Origin: Utricularia gibba
Lineage: Eukaryota; Plantae; Magnoliophyta
Length of the DNA: 64,000 nucleotides
Assembly (NCBI GenBank): GCA_002189035.1
Contig: NEEC01000031.1
Location: 124,001 to 188,000, forward strand
Direction: 5' to 3'
The position numbers and the translations under genes are program-made. Below, in pieces: positions 1-43,400 of the stretch. The notes under the pieces were generated by a model that saw only the letters and a program-made list of their open reading frames with translations, did not search any database and had not been told where the DNA came from. The first letter of the stretch is position 1, and each line of letters opens with the position of its first letter.

Positions 1-453
1 AAAGAATGGCGAAGTGCAGTGTACCCAATAAATTGAAGCTTATCCCTTTGTGATACTGGGTGTGAAATGAAAGTTCAAAGGTGGTAAGGTGCGTTGTACA
101 GATAAAAACCCAGGCTGGTTTTTAATTCCTATGGTCGACAGATTTTCAGTGAATCACAGTGGACTCTTATAGGGTCCATAAAACTACTAGACATTGACAT
201 AGATAGTGTTGTAAATCAAATCCAAAAAATGAAAAACGATCAAAACCTCAACCACGTAATACATTATTCTAAAGAATTTATCGATCTCATGGTTAACAGC
301 CTCTTCGAAAATATGATCTCTGATTTCCATTTTAGAAATCATCAATTGAATATATATGAGAAATGTGTAATCTCTACATCTTCTCAAATAGAAGAATTTT
401 CGACAGATCCAATGATCCCCATTACCAACATGCAAATGATTGATTATACAAAT

Positions 454-968: not shown

Positions 969-2136
969 CCCAAATGGAAGCTACTAGAAGTTACTAGAGG
1001 TTAAACTTGGAAGTGATGGGTTTGAATTCTGGGGTGGGGTTGTGGAGATAATGTGAATTGTTAAATGGTATGGATGAGGGGTATGAGTAGGGGGGGCCAA
1101 ACAAGACATGAGGGTGAGCAGACAAGTAAACATCAAGTGCTACGAGCATCAGATGAGTGATGCATCTAAGTACACGAAAGCTGGTGAAGCCCACTTATTA
1201 GTAAATGCCCAAATGGATCCTTTTCCACGGTCTGCATTCATCACACTTACCAGCAATATTGGGCACTTGAACAGAGAGTGGCACACAGAAACAAGAAAAA
1301 AAAAAAAACTAAAACCAGCAGCAGCCAAGCAGATGATGACTCATTTCTTCCTCAGAACAGGTACAGTGTCCTCCAAGGCTTTGGTGTCTTTCCTCTCACG
1401 CCCTTCTCTTAGTTTGATTACAAAGGTTATTACAGTAACCAACAGTCCAGGAAAGACAACTATAACGATAGTTACAATAAAAAAAAAAAAAAAAACAGAA
1501 GAAAGAAAGAAAGAAAGTAGGGAAGGAAATCATAAGCCACCACTGTGGAATGAAACCATGTGCTTTTGGCAGAAGGGAAAAATCTGAAGGCCTTGTGCTC
1601 ATTGACAGCACGCAGCAGCATGGATCATGGCAACACAATCATGTGCGCACTCAGTGCAGGCATGAACAGGAACGAGAACAAGAAAAATTAAACATGTACT
1701 GCCACAAGGATGGGGCCCTGCTGGTAAGTTCAGTGAGCCATGAGGCTGAAACAACAACAACAACGCGACATATACAGCACTATGTTTGCCATGCGATCAT
1801 CTCCAGCGCTCTTATTAACTTTGGCGTTATGATTTAACTGGTGTGGACTGTGGAGGAAGTGGGGTTACCTTAGTCTGTGATCGGAAAGGTAGATAGATAG
1901 ATAGATCTCTTCGTCTTCGTTAGTATAAAACATGGGAATGGGGTCTGTGCGGGGGAGATCGAACATGTACAAGGTTCCCTCCAAAACTAGGCGAGGCCCG
2001 CCACGTGCTCAAAACAAAGAAGATGCTCGATGGGAATGATTGAGCTTCGGCGTTAGATAAAGATAGCAGATGGAGATGGCTTAGCAACTCAGAAACCCAT
2101 TGAACATTTCTTAAATTTCATGCAGATTTCGTGGTA

Positions 2137-34326: not shown

Positions 34327-35386
34327 GAGCAGAACAGCGCCTTCTCCGATGGACAGGGAACACAGAAGCAGTGGTGATGAGGCGTGCTTGTGCTGATTTA
34401 TAGGGATCCAAAGTCTCTTGTCTTTGAGTCCATTCACACCCTCTTTTTTTCTCTTTTTGAGATTCTTAGAAACGTCTCATTGAAGCCCTTGATCCCAATA
34501 CTGTTACATCCCCAAAGGCCAAATGCACGACTGTTCACTGCTAAAGGCAGATGACCATCGCACACAGTTCTAACACTTGGTTTTGTTGCCAGTTTCTAAA
34601 TTTGAAACCCACTGCTAATCTCAACCAGTGTTTGGTGTAGAACCACCTCCAAAAATAAATAAATTGGTAGTGCAATATTTTCCTCTCAAGAAAAGAGTCC
34701 CATCCATCCCTTACGTTTCTTGGTCACCAAACCAATCAACCCATCACTTACTTGTGGTAGAATATGTTGGATTTCGATCGTGATAATATCTATCAAAACT
34801 TCCAAGATCTTGATCATCAGATTAAAAGAATTTATTGTGGGGACTTAATTTTTTTTTTTCAAGAGTGGTGTTTATTAATTTTTTTGATTTAATTTCACTT
34901 TGAATGATGTATTATAAATCTGGTCACTGTATTTTGAGTGTGTAAAAAAAATGATTATCATATATGTAATTTTGGTGATAGTATATGAGAGATAATGGCC
35001 GGATGGGCCTTTTTTTATTGACCCTCAATGTGAACTATCCGACCCGATTCGGGAGGCGAACCTAAATAAGTAGGCTCGGGAAGTGGGGGACCACAGTGGT
35101 AAAGAGTTGGCTCCGTCTGGGGCGGTCACTTTCGGCTAAACCCCCCTGCCCTGCCCCGCCCCGCCCCCATGAATATTATAACATTTTTTTGTAATAATTT
35201 AAAGGTGAAGTACGTGTATATGATGAATCATTTGTTGTAATGAATAAGGTTGTTGTCCTTGTACTACACAACTCAGTCTCCTTCCCTAAGAAAGCAAGCA
35301 GGCGACGAGGGCGGTTTCATTTCCCTTTCAACGAATTAACAGGAGAAACGAAACATGTTTCACTACTTCCTGGCAGCAGAAAAAAG

Positions 35387-35447
35387 AAGTCAATGCCCGA
35401 ACCATTCGGTGTTGCAAAAGGGGCACCGGATGGTGCGTTCTTGACTC
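35387..35447 (-). promoter_or_regulatory. Conserved HD-ZIP IV 3'UTR RNA stem-loop element
   Basis: mRNA strand: GAGUCAA-GAACGC-ACCAUCCGGUG-CCCCUUUUGCAA-CACCGAAUGGU-UCGGGCA-UUGACUU, 63-123 nt after the stop codon. It contains the family motif UGGUUCGGG(Y)AUUGACUU. Confidence 0.8.
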
Positions 35448-35509
35448 CTGATATGAATCGAATTTACTGGTTTCGAAAGCATCATTTCTGCCCTCCCTGG
35501 ACGCTCCTA

Positions 35510-38363
35510 CTAACTGATGTTCAGGGATGCCTTGATCTGGTTCACCGTGCTGCTTATCAGACTGTTCACTGTGGCTACCGACTCGTGGTTCATTCTTGCT
35601 GATGGAAGGTTGCTTACCAGGATTTGGAACAAGATGGTGATCAGGGAGCCCGCAGGGAAAGCTTCGGGACCGCTGTTCGGTTTGCTCTCCGGCCGGCCGT
35701 CTGAGGAAATTGTGAAACCGTAGGGGAGTAAGGGAATGTAAGAAGGGTCCTCGCCGCTCATGGCGATGTTGATCGCCGGCAGGTCGACAGGACAGTAGAC
35801 CACCAGCGAACCGGATGCGTCGATGCAGCTCTCTTGGAGGATCAGCATGTTGTTTTGGCTCGTGTTGTAGGCCTGTGATGCAGGACATCATGCTTCTATC
35901 TAGCAGTGACAGTGCCAAAGAGAAAGTATGGAGCTTACCCTCAGGACTGAAATGCAGTTTCCAGGGTGAGAGCCATTGGCAATGTGAGCAACTTCCTCCA
36001 CAGGGTTCTGGTTGAGGACATCCCACTGCAGAAGGTAATGGCTAATGTTATCAGAAGAAGCTGATTTTTCCAGCCAATGACACGAATACTACTTGGCTGT
36101 CCAGTTACCTGAGGACGGCAACGCTCATCGCGCAAGAAGTTGAAGACGTTTAGTGGAGAAACGGGGAGCCATATCGTTGCTGAGGCACTGATGACGAGTC
36201 CATTGGGCTGGCCAGGGTCGCTGCTCCGACGAACTGTGGTTCGGACTTCAAAATCGTGGGTTGCTGAGAGTGTGTTCCACTGCTCACCATTGGAAGGGTT
36301 GATGCTTGAGCAAAAGTAGCTCACCATTCTCTGTGCAAGCTTCATCATGCTTCTTTTACCTTCCGGTGATGGAATCACTGTGAAAAAAACAGAAACAGCG
36401 CTTTTGAATTCACAATCGGAAGATACATCACAGACAAGCAGCAGTTCGAGTTTTCAGCTCTGGTTTTACCTCCTCCAAGATCCTGTGTAGAAGTTGCACC
36501 AACCATTGAACAAGCAATTCTTTCACACATTCTCTGCAGCGATGAGAGCCATCTTTCTGCACCATACGCGAATCCGCTACAAATAAGGTCTCGATAAAGC
36601 TGATGGATGGGTGTTTTATCCTCGACTTCCCAATGTTCTACCCAGGTAACCTGGAAAACGCAAAACACAATAAAACAACAAAGAAGAAGAGACAAAAGGC
36701 ACATAAAATATAAAACTAGTGCTCAATTCTGAAACCTTTGAGTAGCCATCGGGCATGTCTTGGATCAGGCAACCAGAAGGAAGCCTGAGAGCTTTGCAAG
36801 GAGAAGAAAAGTAGCCTTCTTGGTGAGCCATATCATAGGAGACATCAACAATTGCCCATGATCCCGATTCGACTTGCTGACAGAAACGGAGAAAGTAGAG
36901 CTGTCTGATGGGAACTACGGATGAGAGCACCTGAAGTTCTCCACACATCTGCAACAAATTTAAGAATCACGCCATGAAATCTTCATTTGTCAGAACAAAA
37001 AAAAAAGTACCGCAATGACGTTCTGTATATTACCAGCAACAATGTTCCACTCTGTCCAGAGGATATCACTTCAACAATTCGTGCCTTCGCCACGATTGTT
37101 GGAAAAAGTTCAATCCATTTGTTCTACAAATACGAAATTCTTTCATTGAGTTGAGTAAAAAGTCAAAACAAAACAAGGTATGCCAACTTACTGCATCCAT
37201 GAACATATCAACAAGCGCCAAACTGTTCATTATAACCACACTCGCATCCCTGGATGCTTCAATTCGAGCATTTGGATTCTTGGGCCTCGGAAACATACTA
37301 TCATAGGCTTCAAGGTTAAGCATTTCACTACCCTCCGAAGAGGGTTTCATCCAAAGAGACTCATTGCCCTGCAACAGCCTAATCAGCTCATTCAAAGCAC
37401 CACCGGCGCAATCAGCCATGACGGATTTGTCCACATCGGAAAGGCTCAACGGAGCAAAGGGTATATCGGTAACTACGCTAGACGATGTTCCTGGAAGAAG
37501 ATCAAGGTCAAGAGAAGGACCAGGGATGCCATGGCTACCGAAGTTGGACATGGATAAATCCAATGAAGAAGCGTGCATAGGCTGCATTGGAGGAAGCTGT
37601 GCAAGTGGCCTTCCCATGTATTTGGCGGCTATGCTTGAAACTCTGTCCAGCTGCAAAAACGATCGAAGCAAGTGAATATCAAATCAAAGTGGATGGAAAC
37701 CAGAACTTCTTTTCATAAAGTCATTACCTCTTGTTTTAACTGAGCATTTTCAATACGAAGTTTTTGCTCGTTGAAGAAGGGATCCTCGTTGACTGGAGGC
37801 CCTCCACAAGTTGGGCAAATCACGTTCTTGAGAGCTTCACGAATCGCTATGTTTTCACATCTGATTTTGTCATTCTCGACTCTAAGAGCACAGTTATCTG
37901 CTCTTTCGTGTTGCGCCTGAAAGAATAAAAAAATGATTTCTTTTTTTCTTTTTATAATCTGAAACAAGACAAAAACTGAGGGTTTAAAAAAGAAAGAAAA
38001 GAAGAAACCTTCATCTGGGTTCTTCTGTTCTGAAACCAGAATTTGATTTGCCGGGGATGCAGATTAAGCTCTCTACTCAATAAGTTTCTTGTTTTTTCAT
38101 CCGGGTGTGGGCAATCTCTAAACATTCTGAACAAAAAGCCCCAAAATTGACGCCATTTGCACCCCCCACAAAACCAGCAAAGAAAAGTAACAGAAAAATT
38201 TGTTCTTTGTGCATGGAGTGCAAAAAGGTTAATAAAAATTGACCAACCGTTCAAGCCTCTGAATCTGCTCAGGGGTGTGACGATGGTACCGCTTCTTTCT
38301 CCGGCGAGAATCAGCACCATCGTGGAGGTCTCCCCCTCCACCGCCACCGCTGCTGAACTCCAT
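35510..38363 (-). CDS. HDG11: HD-ZIP class IV transcription factor (HDG11/HDG12-like), 10 exons
   Basis: [48 protein letters not shown]...[14 protein letters not shown]|AQHERADN (homeodomain); CPTCGGP zipper loop; START domain ([30 protein letters not shown]|VTWVEH); SAD domain ending QIKASLNIS. All introns GT-AG. Confidence 0.94.
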
Positions 38364-40457
38364 AACCACAGCACGACGACGTTTCACACGCTGAACATAC
38401 AACTAATCAAGGCCGATTCAAAAGAGCTCCACCAGATTACAAGCTCTTCCCATAATACAGTTGGCGCAAGGCACTCCCCCGCGTTACGACACAGCTCAGA
38501 AATGCCAAAATATGGTAATAACGAAGTAAAAACCGTAGACCAGAAGAAGAATATCTGGGATTCGAGAGCAGATTTCAAGGCATAAGCCAAGTTTTCATTT
38601 TTGGAAGTTGGGCAAGTGAAACGCTCGGTATATATACAGACGCACAGAAGTTACAAAAAAAAAAGAAAAAAAAAAGAAACTTTATTATTTAATGGGAGAG
38701 AATCAAGGAAAAGGAAATGGAGGAAGGGAAGAAAGAAGAAGAAGAAAGAGTGTAGTAAAATTGTGGGTGTGTGCTATAAATAAAAGCCCTATGTTTTTCC
38801 GATCTCTACATTCAACGCGGTGGCGAGATCGTCACCGTCGGAGTTAATGGCGGTCTGATCACACGGCGAGAGACCAACGCCTTGCAATTAAGAAGACAAC
38901 CCAACAATCAAAAAGTCCTCCATATGTCCATGTGCGACTTCCTATATCTAGTTATCGAGTAGTTGCACACGAAGCATTGAGCCACACTGCCTGCAGAACC
39001 CCAAAGAAACTCTTGAATGCATGCCAAACCCAAAGCCTTATGGATGAATGATGGACTCCATCTTCAGACTCCATGGATGGAGTGTACCAGGCAGCAGCGC
39101 ATGGCATGGTGTACGGCGAGTGCGAGCGGGAGGATGGTTGACGACGGGTCCATCATTCATTGACTCCTTTTTTTCAAATTTGTTTAAAAAAAGACAGAAT
39201 TGTTTATTATTTGGGAAATAATAGTAATAAATAATAAAGGTGGGGAGAAAAAGGACAGGCAGAATTAGTTATGGGGGTGGATACAAAAATGAAAACATAC
39301 ATGCCGACGCCGTAACGTGATAGGCGGGTACGCTTCCCGCTTTTATTCCTTCCCACCAAAACAGTCGCAGTAGTTAATGCTGGTGGCTGCCACCGCCGCC
39401 GTCGCAGCAAGCAACGGGGGGGAGAGAGAAAGAGAGAGGATTGATTCCGGCGGCGAAGGCGATACCCCCCTCCCTGCTTACCCCAGCCCTAAGTCCATCT
39501 ATTTAATTAATGTGGGGCGCCTTCTTTCAAATCCCTCCCTCCCTCAAGGTCAAAAGTAGTGTATTTCTGCCCCAGATTGGGGGTTACTTTTAATTTTTTC
39601 TTTTTTTTTTACTGCGGTACGTACAACATATTTAGTTGCGACTGGGGCAGTAGTACTCGTTGTTGTGAAAGCAGGAGCAGATTTGCATCCATCCATCATC
39701 GATGCTTGCTGCTTGCTGCTGCTGTGTGTACTCTCCGATTGCGGCGAGGGGTGATGTGGATGCGGGGAGCGGAGCCTGCTGCTCCCGCTGGTGATGAATA
39801 ATAATAATTCCTTAACAAGTTGTCAAAACGACAGACGCCCGTCTAATGTAATCCTCCCACATGCACATGCTGCTGCTGCTGTTGCTGCTGTTGCTGCTGC
39901 TTTAATCTCGAGTTATTACAAGTGGAATAAAGGAGGCAGCATGTCATTAATGTTCTCGGCTGCAGGAACCAGCCCGCCCCAGCCAAGCCAAGCCCAGCAG
40001 CAGCAGCAGTAACGAGCGCCTCCTCCGTTCCATCATCCATGGGCTGGACGCACTACTGGTGCCAGGGTCGCAAGTGCAAATCCATTCTTCTCTATAAGAA
40101 GACGGGACGGGATGCCGAGCGACGGTGACGCTGACCCTGCCCTCCTCCATAATTACTACTAGTATATTATTTATGGGTGATTCGCGTGGGTAGATTTAGA
40201 TTTAGATTTAGATTTTGCCTATGCCTTTGACTTGGAAATTTATTGCGAGGCCGACTCCTCCTCTGGTTATTCCCACTCCCGCTGTTCTGTTATTATTGTT
40301 ATTGCAATTCCGAGTCCAGGCACCTGCCCCGGGCCGTTTGTCTTCCACGCCGTGGCATGTTGCGCCTTGTTCTGTTTTATAACCCAAATTATTCCAGTCA
40401 TCGGCGGAGGGGGAGTACAATTAATAATTAATGCCTGCCTGGCTAATGGCTATTCAT

Positions 40458-43400
40458 TCATTTTCCAGTGGCAGTGGCAGGTGATGGACGCTGGCCGCGA
40501 CTCATGCGCTTCTTGCGATACCTCCACGCCACTTGGATCTTCCTGGTGGCCAGTTCTCTCCAGTAGGGCGAGTCGTACCTGCATCATGGATGGATATGGA
40601 TACATACTCATGAGCTGACAGCGCATCCCAGAGTCAGGGAGGGAGGGAGGCAGGGAGAGCAGCGCACCTGATGGCGCACTGGACTTGCCGGGTCTTCAGG
40701 AATCTGTGGAATACGCTGGTGATCTCCTCCAGATCAGCGGCTCGGAGCACGAAAGCTTCCACGTTTGTGAGGCATCTCACCAGCCTGTTGCTCAGGCAAC
40801 CGTGCCCCGGAATGCGGATTCTCTTGTCCCCTGGAACAAACGCCGCATTCGAATCATTCGGAAGGCTCTACAAAGCGAGCGAAGCTGGAGTGGAGTAGAT
40901 GGATTTCGCACCTTTCCTGGCACTCGTTTGATCCAGGTACCACGTGAGGAGTTCTTCCCCACAAACATTACCTTCGGATAACAGAACCGCGTTCCGGTCA
41001 TACCCGACGCTCTCTATTTCTCCACGGATTATGAACACCATTTTGTTGATGAGGCCTCCCGGGAAGAAGATCTTTCCACCTTCGATGAAGGTCGTCGTTC
41101 TCAGGCGTTCGCAGATGACGTCTAGAACGGAATCATCCAGTAGCTTGAAAATCTGGACCTGCCAGACACTCCACTCCATTCACTTCATGGGGACTGCTAC
41201 GCAATGGGGTGAGGAGGATGACGTCAAGGACTTACTCGCTTCACGAATTTGAAGAGATGCCGCCGCACGTCCCTCTGGAGGTCCTCCGGAAGGTTTTCCA
41301 TCAGCTTCTCTTCGTTCACTCCCTGTGATGCAGCCCAGTGGAAACGTTCAGCTTCTCGAACTTGGCTGCAAGGCTCAAATCATGTTGGAGCATATTAACA
41401 AGGAATACCACGAGGTTGATGTAAGTGAGAAAGACAACCTCCGGAGGTGAGCTGGCAGTCGGCGGTGATGCATCCATCGCTCAACATCTCGATGCCGTAG
41501 CGTCATTTCTAGTCTCCTGTGAAGCAGCAGCAAGAAAGCAGTTAGCATTGTGGGTACTGATAGAGAAGACACCGGTGCACTGCTCAGAGTTCTCACACCT
41601 CCGCCCAAGAGACTGTAGAAAGTTCTGCATGTTTCCGATGAGCAAAGCAAAGAGTATCAGCCCAATTCCGATGATCGTCATGATAAAAAGAACTTCCCCC
41701 TCATAGTAACTGGGCTGTTGATTACCGGCGAGGGTACTAATTTGCTAACAGATGGACACGGACGTCAGATCACACGGATGAGGAAGCTTACTCACATTCC
41801 ATGAAGACTGAAGATTACCTGGAAACCCCAGAACAACGAGTACACATATCTTGTGACAAGACTTCGTTTTGTTGTAAGATTGACTCCAGATCTGTAGATT
41901 CCATACGGGAAGCTGCCCTCTTGTTTGAAACAATCGATCGCGTTAGTATTGTTTCTCCACTCATTCCACAGTGACTCGTTCGCGAAATCATAAACTTGAC
42001 CATGCCCACAGTCAAGGAAGTCCTCAAATTTTGAAATGTTACTGTGTCGGCAGGCATCTCTAAGGCATTCGTTCACTCTCTACAGACATACAAACAGAGA
42101 GGAAGATGGTTAAAGTCTTGTCATGTATTCAAGCAAAATCACGAAATCCAACATCCACAGACGAAGAAAGCTCATGAATCCTAGACCCCTGATTTCACAA
42201 AAATTATAACCAAATCTACGAAACTCTCCTTGTGTTTCTTCTGCTATTTTAAAACTATGAAACTGAGGAAAAGGTATGAATCCGAGAAGCAAACCTGCAG
42301 GGCCAAGAGATACCAGCAAGAGCCTACAGCATGGCCAGCCAAAACGAACATGAGAAGATTTATGATAAAATTTGACCATGCGGACTCAAATATGAACCCT
42401 GTTGGAGATTGACCAGCCAACAGAGGAAAGGATCTGCACAGCCTGGGGACATACTGCAAAATGATGCATATAACCAGAAGGTTTTTTGCCAAATTTGCAA
42501 TTTTTTCAGCATTGGAATGAGGCACAACCAGTACGATAATCTGCACATTTGAGTTGGGAGAATCAGTGATCCGACAAAAACGATAGGAGAGAAACATGTG
42601 GAAACTTTTTCATATATCGACAAGTACCTGAGGAAGAGGTAGAACCACAATGAAATCGATGATAAAACATCCAGTCATGTACCTATGAGCAATTTTTCGG
42701 GGATCGTCCACCATTGTTCCAGCTCCCACAACTTTAGAATCTGGAGCAATATACGCCATCCTAAACTGAAAATCAAGAACATTCAGTGCTTCATTTTTTT
42801 TCAGATTTTCTGAACAAAAGAACCAACCGTACATGTTCTATGGGAGAAGAAATGCTAATGATTTAATAAACATATGATTCCTCAGAGGTAATGATGTGAA
42901 AGAGTTACCTGAAGCAGTATATGGAGGAAATAAATAAAGTCACTCAAGCTTCGTAACACCACGAGTGCCTTTGTCATGGGCCAGTTTAGGACTATGCACT
43001 TGTAATCCTTCATGGAAGAATGAATTAAGGAAGCATTACTAAAAGCAGTCATCAGAAATCAGAAATCATCTTCCCATGTAGCTAGGAAGATTATTTAACT
43101 GAATGCACCCAAACAAACACAGAAGGGAAACTTGTCTGGAAAAACAGATAGAAAATGAAATGAATTGCACAAATTTAAATGTGAAAGCTGAACTAAATGG
43201 CGTACCTCCCGTGTTACCAGAAGAAAAAAGAATAGCGGATCAATGAATATAGCGAAGAGGCAGGACAATACTAAGAGCTTGTTCCACCGTTGTGTAAATT
43301 TTGAATGAGGATTGACGATGACAGGGATACAACGTTGCATAAAAGAGCTGATTCTCTCTGTAAAACCCGTTGAACCTCCATAGAGTAGATCATAGATCTG

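Follow-up and report, generated by a model that had tools for sequence, protein, structure and literature searches.

The window, by which we mean the whole 64-kb stretch of the Utricularia gibba contig analyzed here, carries on its minus strand a run of exon-sized ORFs (~38402–35510) in which we detected the Pfam domains Homeodomain (E 7.6e-14), START (E 2.9e-12), and PDF2_C (E 1.8e-43 and 2.9e-31). Because all three domains are present, we assigned the host to the class IV HD-Zip (HD-ZIP IV, C4HDZ) genes, bearing out the family named in a first-pass annotation of this DNA. Epidermal identity is specified in a dose-sensitive manner by HD-ZIP IV proteins (ATML1, PDF2, GL2, ROC, OCL). The coding span (35510..38402, minus strand) comprises ~10 exons, with boundaries that are approximate upstream of 36109. 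The last coding exon (35510..35872, minus strand), which yields the PDF2_C match at E 1.8e-43, follows an acceptor AG at 35874-35873 and closes with a TAG stop at 35512-35510; the two introns preceding it on the same strand occupy 35938-35873 and 36108-36026. Exons of the host gene were searched singly, with no joined protein. Among named cluster representatives, those closest to the last exon were ROC8 (Acorus, 72–74% identity), HDG12 (Cucurbita), and an HDG11-like protein (Apium), and in a local tblastn of 35000-38600 the full-length Acorus ROC8 protein matched exon after exon across 38134-35519. Farther upstream, we observed a purine-rich region, including 38645-38692, ahead of the first coding exon, as well as ORF pieces at ~40800-42100 on the minus strand (e.g., FIEGGKIFFPGGLINKMVFIIRGEIESVG) that, by eye, resemble a cyclic-nucleotide-gated channel gene.

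Downstream of the stop codon lies a putative 3′UTR of 310 nt (35200..35509, minus strand), the 3′ end of which is approximate (~35200-35230) but fits the word shares of two sequencing runs. Within it, a 61-nt stem-loop (35387..35447, minus strand) starts 63 nt after the TAG, with 62 nt between the stop and the first of its two conserved motifs. Sampled 31-mers of 35200-36400 were recovered at shares of 0.79 and 0.78 in two sequencing runs (X1 and X2) from the same organism, which are RNA only by guess. The expected share is 0.81-0.78 for a spliced mRNA extending to 35200-35230, 0.59 for one ending before the stem-loop, and 1.0 for fully covered genomic DNA (sampling sd 0.037). Together with the position of the element 63 nt past the stop, these shares fit transcription through the stem-loop, although they do not amount to proof of it.

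Two further features were noted in the same region. A second predicted hairpin of 41 nt (35314-35354, minus strand; GUUUCGUUUCUCC...GGGAAAUGAAAC) lies ~30 nt downstream of the stem-loop and is present in the minimum free energy (MFE) structures of both a 221-nt and the 310-nt context. Just past the probable end of the 3′UTR, at ~35135-35170 on the minus strand, is a G-rich run, GGGGGCGGGGCGGGGCAGGGCAGGGGGG, a possible G-quadruplex tract or simple repeat.

Predicted fold of the stem-loop

On the mRNA strand, the letters of 35447..35387 read GAGUCAAGAACGCACCAUCCGGUGCCCCUUUUGCAACACCGAAUGGUUCGGGCAUUGACUU; we number them such that element position p equals window coordinate 35448 − p. The ends of the element are formed by two conserved motifs: motif 1 (CNS1), GAGUCAAGAACGCACCA, at 35431..35447 on the minus strand (positions 1–17), and motif 2 (CNS2), UGGUUCGGGCAUUGACUU, at 35387..35404 on the same strand (positions 44–61). 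Between them lies a variable distal part (35405..35430, minus strand; positions 18–43), which consists of a stem, UCCGGUG/CACCGAA with a C19.A42 mismatch, capped by a 12-nt apical loop (35412-35423, minus strand). The basal helix is extended by two flanking pairs, A-1/U63 and G0/C62, to 35385..35449 (minus strand), and both of these pairs covary in the family.

All of the pairs drawn in the first-pass annotation were recovered in the fold: those of the 7-bp outer stem GAGUCAA/UUGACUU, the single wobble of which is G1.U61, and those of the inner stem ACCAUCCGGUG/CACCGAAUGGU, with 10 bp and the C19.A42 mismatch. The apical loop of 12 nt was also as drawn. The asymmetric internal loop between the two stems, drawn as GAACGC/UCGGGCA, likewise exists but is smaller than proposed, with G8-C53, C11-G50, and G12-C49 paired and A54 bulged. 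As drawn, the structure evaluates to -18.6 kcal/mol, against an MFE of -23.9 kcal/mol for the 61-nt hairpin (RNAfold). An alternative GAAC/GUUC register, raised as a further possibility, fared poorly: at -14.4 kcal/mol it is 9.5 kcal/mol worse, and it was picked in 0/43 of the family members that we folded.

When the hairpin is folded within the 310-nt 3′UTR, all of its pairs have a probability of at least 0.92. Its stability exceeds that expected from dinucleotide shuffles (z = -3.26; 2/200 shuffles as stable) and places it in the top 0.5% of 61-nt windows on both strands of the 64 kb, among which 90/18,270 are equally stable. The hairpin is thus stable but not unique in this respect, and it is conservation, rather than stability, that provides the decisive evidence. 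Rfam 15 covariance models run over 34800-36000 at E values up to 10 returned no relevant family, including miRNA and riboswitch families; elsewhere, they gave only weak chance matches to snoRNAs or lncRNAs.

Membership in the HD-ZIP IV 3′UTR family

Class IV HD-Zip genes of lineages ranging from liverworts to angiosperms have been described as carrying two conserved 3′UTR motifs of 17 and 18 nt, which are conserved as a stem-loop across land plants (Zalewski 2013, PMC3773374); that study credits the first sightings of the motifs to Ingouff 2003, Nakamura 2006, and Javelle 2011. The first-pass annotation had named such a motif, UGGUUCGGGUAUUGACUU, together with a complementary partner. To avoid choosing sequences by motif, we selected loci by protein only. 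The last exon was searched against 1.84 billion representatives, leading to genome loci from Acorus (L001) and Physcomitrium (L002), and eight aligned C-terminal domain sequences were then used to search metagenome contigs, which yielded 80 plant loci. Sequence extended 800 nt or more past the stop in 65 loci, and 64 of these carried motif 1 (GAGTCAAGARCGMACCA) and, 3′ of it, motif 2 (TGGTTCGGGYATTGACTT), so that the motif pair named in the first-pass annotation is real in protein-selected loci as well as in the literature.

In total, we recovered 43 distinct elements, including that of the window, with lengths of 43-280 nt and a median of 134. The window's copy had been described as long; it is instead among the shortest, its 61 nt placing it fourth from the bottom by length class, behind a pair of 43-nt copies (L029 and L030) and one 55-nt copy (L042). 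It is also the closest to the stop, since motif 1 starts 119-517 nt past the stop in the sampled loci. Position in the 3′UTR and a single orientation are constant across the family loci.

The motif 1 consensus derived from the 42 other distinct elements, GAGUCAAGARCGMACCA, is matched at 17/17 positions at 35447-35431, and the motif 2 consensus, UGGUUCGGGYAUUGACUU, which lies 3′ of motif 1, at 18/18 positions at 35404-35387. A covariance model (R1) built from 36 distinct elements (alignment A4), with the window excluded, returned a single match in the 64-kb window, which scored 62.9 bits (E 3.7e-16) and covers 35453..35381 of the minus strand. The covariance-model match and the exact motif matches settle the identity of the element: the window's stem-loop is a member of the published class IV HD-Zip 3′UTR motif pair, an already known element and no new kind.

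The expanded collection also contains several variant copies. The 43-nt minimal copies (L029/L032/L034 at 2211-2253; L030/L031/L033 at 2234-2276) consist of motif 1, UA-UGYG-UA, and motif 2; in L029 and L030 the apical part reads ACCAUA-UGYG-UAUGGU, with a 4-nt loop. The outer stem is weakened in these copies (UUGGCAU or UUGACAU), and a related locus (L028) retains motif 1 with no recognisable motif 2, suggesting a decaying copy. Many metagenome-derived copies (e.g., L057, L065, L082, L035, L002) carry the CCUUGC/GCAAGG and GGUG/CACC sub-motifs that have been described for non-angiosperms (PMC3773374), which fall in columns ~45-60 and 300-312 of alignment A3. Of these, the window's stem-loop keeps only GGUG/CACC, which adjoins the apical loop; the loop itself contains a CCUUUUGC remnant. 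This pattern is consistent with deletion of the distal stem.

L083 and L084 carry ordinary long copies of 155 and 132 nt, respectively. In L084, a Logan contig, the stem-loop (1841-1972, minus strand) and the HD-ZIP IV fragment that retrieved the locus are on opposite strands. This stem-loop is part of a different gene and adjoins a truncated 28-aa gene where the contig ends. This arrangement could represent either a tail-to-tail HD-ZIP IV pair or an assembly chimera.

A conserved core with covariation at its edges

The two motifs pair in one register in the MFE structures of 43/43 elements, and RNAalifold applied to 37 distinct sequences recovered the same 16-pair core. Covariation was assessed from RNAalifold counts combined with our own pair counts and shuffles; alignment A5, obtained from the model search, was left out because antisense and truncated matches were mixed into it. 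Across the 37 sequences, the outer helix of the core joins positions -1..7 with 55..63, and its pairs 2-7/60-55 are essentially invariant. Toward its base, pair 1/61 occurs as G.U in 21 sequences, G-C in 10, A-U in 1, and C.A in 5; flanking pair 0/62 as G-C in 25, U.G in 6, and U-A in 3; and flanking pair -1/63 in five standard pair types, being paired in 78% of sequences versus 49% after shuffling. Above the outer helix, G8 faces Y53 (G.U in 26, G-C in 11), A9.G52 is invariant, position 10 (A, G, or U) lies opposite an invariant G51, and A54 forms an invariant bulge. These are followed by the invariant pairs C11-G50 and G12-C49, a variable pair 13/48 (C.U 21, A-U 16), and an invariant ACC/GGU helix that continues into pair 17/44 (A-U 27, G.U 8, U.U 2) and pair 18/43 (U-A 16, C-G 14, U.G 4, broken 3). 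Altogether, ~35 nt have been sequence-invariant over the whole of land-plant evolution.

Since the core is invariant, it gives no covariation of its own. Compensatory changes occur only at the core edges, at pairs -1/63, 0/62, and 18/43, and in per-pair shuffles 0/2000 reached the observed pairing at -1/63, 0/62, 1/61, or 18/43. These changes are real, but they represent few independent events, because related genes and gene clades share states, and they are confined to the edges of a frozen block. Columns past position 18 pair no better than shuffled ones because the helix register differs between genes. The distal part is conserved neither in sequence nor in length across the family, and the interiors are nevertheless more stably folded than dinucleotide-shuffled versions of themselves (mean z -2.4; 22/43 below -2). 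The division proposed earlier, with conserved bases in the outer stem and internal loop and a structural inner stem, holds in part: the outer stem and a small internal loop are conserved, and the distal part is variable (43-280 nt overall) yet tends to fold, but conservation also extends 4-5 bp into the inner stem (ACCA/UGGU plus 18/43).

Pairing also favors the sense strand. The core is more stable in the sense than in the antisense orientation in 17/17 distinct cores, and the whole element in 32/43 (Wilcoxon p 0.0006, for sequences that are not independent); likewise, covariance-model scores are 51-96 bits in sense and 28 or less in antisense. The full hairpin of the window is an exception to this energy asymmetry (-30.2 antisense vs -23.9 sense), because its C19.A42 mismatch becomes a G.U pair on the opposite strand.

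This strand dependence bears on whether the conservation might act at the level of DNA, through a transcription-factor site in a downstream enhancer or silencer. The outer stem, read as AGTCAA ... TTGACT, does contain the W-box core TTGACY, the WRKY site, twice in inverted orientation and resembles an inverted pair of W-box-like TTGACT sites. The motifs are, moreover, listed among conserved non-coding sequences (Burgess and Freeling 2014, as cited in PMC8133684). However, conservation reaches well past the hexamers, and the wobbles G1.U61 (21/37), G8.U53 (26/37), and G17.U44 (8/37), together with the U-A/C-G swaps, keep pairing on the sense strand only. The element is also always in the 3′UTR and in one orientation, and nuclear run-on in rice showed transcription unchanged in a CNS2 point mutant (PMC8133684). 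We consider a DNA-level explanation hardly credible and favor an element that is conserved as a structure on the mRNA.

The invariant unpaired bases invited comparison with known RNA motifs. The sarcin-ricin or loop E (bulged-G) motif places AGUA opposite GAA in a 3x4 loop flanked by Watson-Crick pairs. The internal loop of the family, with G8 A9 A10 opposite G51 G52 Y53 A54, is likewise 3x4, so that a sarcin-ricin-like form is possible; its first base, however, is G rather than A, and the C at position 53 in 11/37 sequences fits a plain G8-Y53 pair better. A kink-turn does not fit, as the 3′ strand of the loop lacks a GA.

The same bases could in principle form a ligand-sensing aptamer, and the first-pass annotation had named ligand binding as one option for a candidate post-transcriptional switch. 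Unpaired A9, G51, G52, A54, and U48 are indeed invariant in 37/37 distinct sequences, from moss to angiosperms, and feedback through the lipid-binding START domain of the host protein is conceivable, if speculative. Yet only ~6-7 nt are both invariant and unpaired, and they include neither a multi-helix junction nor an architecture able to form a pocket, while the length of the remaining stem ranges from 8 to 245 nt. No Rfam riboswitch matched, and a switch would depend on the alternative register, which lies 9.5 kcal/mol higher and is never chosen. The same reasons against a riboswitch were given by Zalewski 2013 (PMC3773374). We found no support for a ligand-binding switch, and a riboswitch-like role appears very improbable.

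A probable cis-repressive function

Small RNAs, a riboswitch, and a protein site have all been weighed as functions of the motifs, with arguments against the first two (PMC3773374). Direct evidence comes from rice, in which the URL1/ROC8 mutation C679T in CNS2, which changes a G-C pair to G.U, leaves nascent transcription unchanged and slows mRNA decay (Fang 2021, PMC8133684). The mutation raises both reporter mRNA and luciferase activity, with transgenics in agreement, and causes a leaf-rolling phenotype (PMC8133684). In addition, a 50-bp 3′UTR deletion covering the conserved 20 bp, crm1-D, raises ROC8 protein (Sun 2020, PMC7680540). In maize, OCL1 is reported to be repressed via its 3′UTR by small1, a 24-nt RDR2-dependent small RNA (Klein-Cosson 2015, as cited in PMC8133684 and PMC7680540). 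Published mechanisms differ: mRNA decay and translational repression have both been put forward, as has the 24-nt small RNA of maize. The first-pass annotation had described the mechanism as largely unresolved; it is less open than that, given that mutation or deletion of the element in rice ROC8/URL1 stabilises the mRNA and raises the protein.

The maize finding speaks for reading the motifs as a small-RNA target or source, that is, as a miRNA-like hairpin or siRNA target through which Argonaute would repress the host. Such a reading could also draw on the RLM-RACE ends mapped in rice, which fall in or adjoin CNS1 and CNS2 (PMC8133684) and may be taken as cleavage sites, and on an earlier prediction of the hairpins as miRNA precursors (Adai 2005, as cited in PMC3773374). 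Against it, however, no small RNAs were found from the Arabidopsis loci, the most variable sites lie in the middle of the complementary stretches (PMC3773374), and no complementary miRNA or siRNA was found for ROC8 (Sun 2020, PMC7680540). In our own data, no Rfam miRNA family matched at E values up to 10, the 43-nt copies with a 4-nt loop (L029/L030) cannot be Dicer substrates yielding 21-24-mers, and both arms are conserved and show compensatory changes, as would suit pairing within one molecule. We therefore regard a small-RNA mechanism as unlikely and return to a stem-loop that is probably itself recognised on the mRNA.

On this evidence, we consider it very likely, by homology to ROC8/URL1 and OCL1, that the window harbors a compact, cis-repressive member of the known class IV HD-Zip 3′UTR stem-loop. 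CNS1 and CNS2 pair with each other on the mRNA, producing a conserved core composed of the outer helix, the small asymmetric loop, the G-C pairs 11/50 and 12/49, pair 13/48, and ACCA-N/N-UGGU, with the remainder probably serving as a variable spacer. In U. gibba, as in rice, the stem-loop would then act in cis to lower the stability and/or the translation of its mRNA and may thereby maintain a low level of a dose-sensitive epidermal regulator. The most likely means would be a trans-acting factor, presumably a protein, that recognises the invariant loop-plus-helix; specific recognition is favored over bulk stability because the mild G-C to G.U change in rice suffices and because the unpaired bases are invariant. 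Our literature search returned no paper naming a trans-acting factor for the HD-ZIP IV 3′UTR stem-loop.

More tentatively, we propose, as a possibility slightly less likely than not, that the invariant loop and its flanking helices constitute the whole functional unit and have served as the docking site of one RNA-binding factor since the first land plants. Such a unit would comprise G8-Y53, A9 N10 / G51 G52, the bulged A54, and N13.U48. If so, the minimal copies (61 nt in the window; 43 nt in L029/L030; 55 nt in L042) would define the minimal bait for that factor, and the joint dosing of all HD-ZIP IV epidermal regulators would be explained.

Significance and comparison with known systems

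Few non-coding RNA structures of land plants are as deeply conserved as this element, for which Rfam nevertheless has no family, and a change of one base within it rolls the rice leaf. By-products of our survey include a covariance model for this family absent from Rfam, a map of invariant unpaired bases versus covarying pairs, and a set of short natural versions (43-61 nt) that are handy for pull-downs, structure probing, and structure determination.

Relative to the published class IV HD-Zip 3′UTR stem-loop (CNS1 of 17-19 nt and CNS2 of 18-21 nt), the window's copy shares the host family, motif letters, order, strand, and register, and ROC8, in which the rice element was tested, is among the nearest named relatives of its host protein. 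The two nonetheless differ in dimensions: the window's copy spans 61 nt versus ~200 nt in rice ROC8 (a length read from RACE fragment sizes), and its motif 1 begins 63 nt past the stop, whereas motif 2 lies at +679 in rice. The copy also lacks the CCUUGC/GCAAGG sub-motifs of non-angiosperms (PMC3773374).

Among animal systems, the Roquin constitutive decay element and the histone stem-loop bound by SLBP offer an analogy, as they are likewise short 3′UTR hairpins whose integrity lowers mRNA stability (PMC8133684). Those stem-loops, however, are read via their apical loops, whereas the apical part of the HD-ZIP IV element is variable and its invariant bases lie in the basal internal loop. There is no similarity in sequence or shape between them, and the HD-ZIP IV element is not a member of either group. 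To our knowledge, no plant reader of such an element has been described.

Another parallel is provided by highly structured plant 3′UTRs, in which structure correlates with lower mRNA accumulation, with decay proceeding through SOV and XRN4 (Zhang et al. 2024, PMC10885604). That effect is independent of sequence, whereas the HD-ZIP IV element contains sequence-invariant bases and a single base change in rice abolishes repression. With ~35 invariant nt and with repression lost upon a single G-C to G.U change, the comparison points to specific recognition of the HD-ZIP IV stem-loop rather than to an effect of bulk structure.
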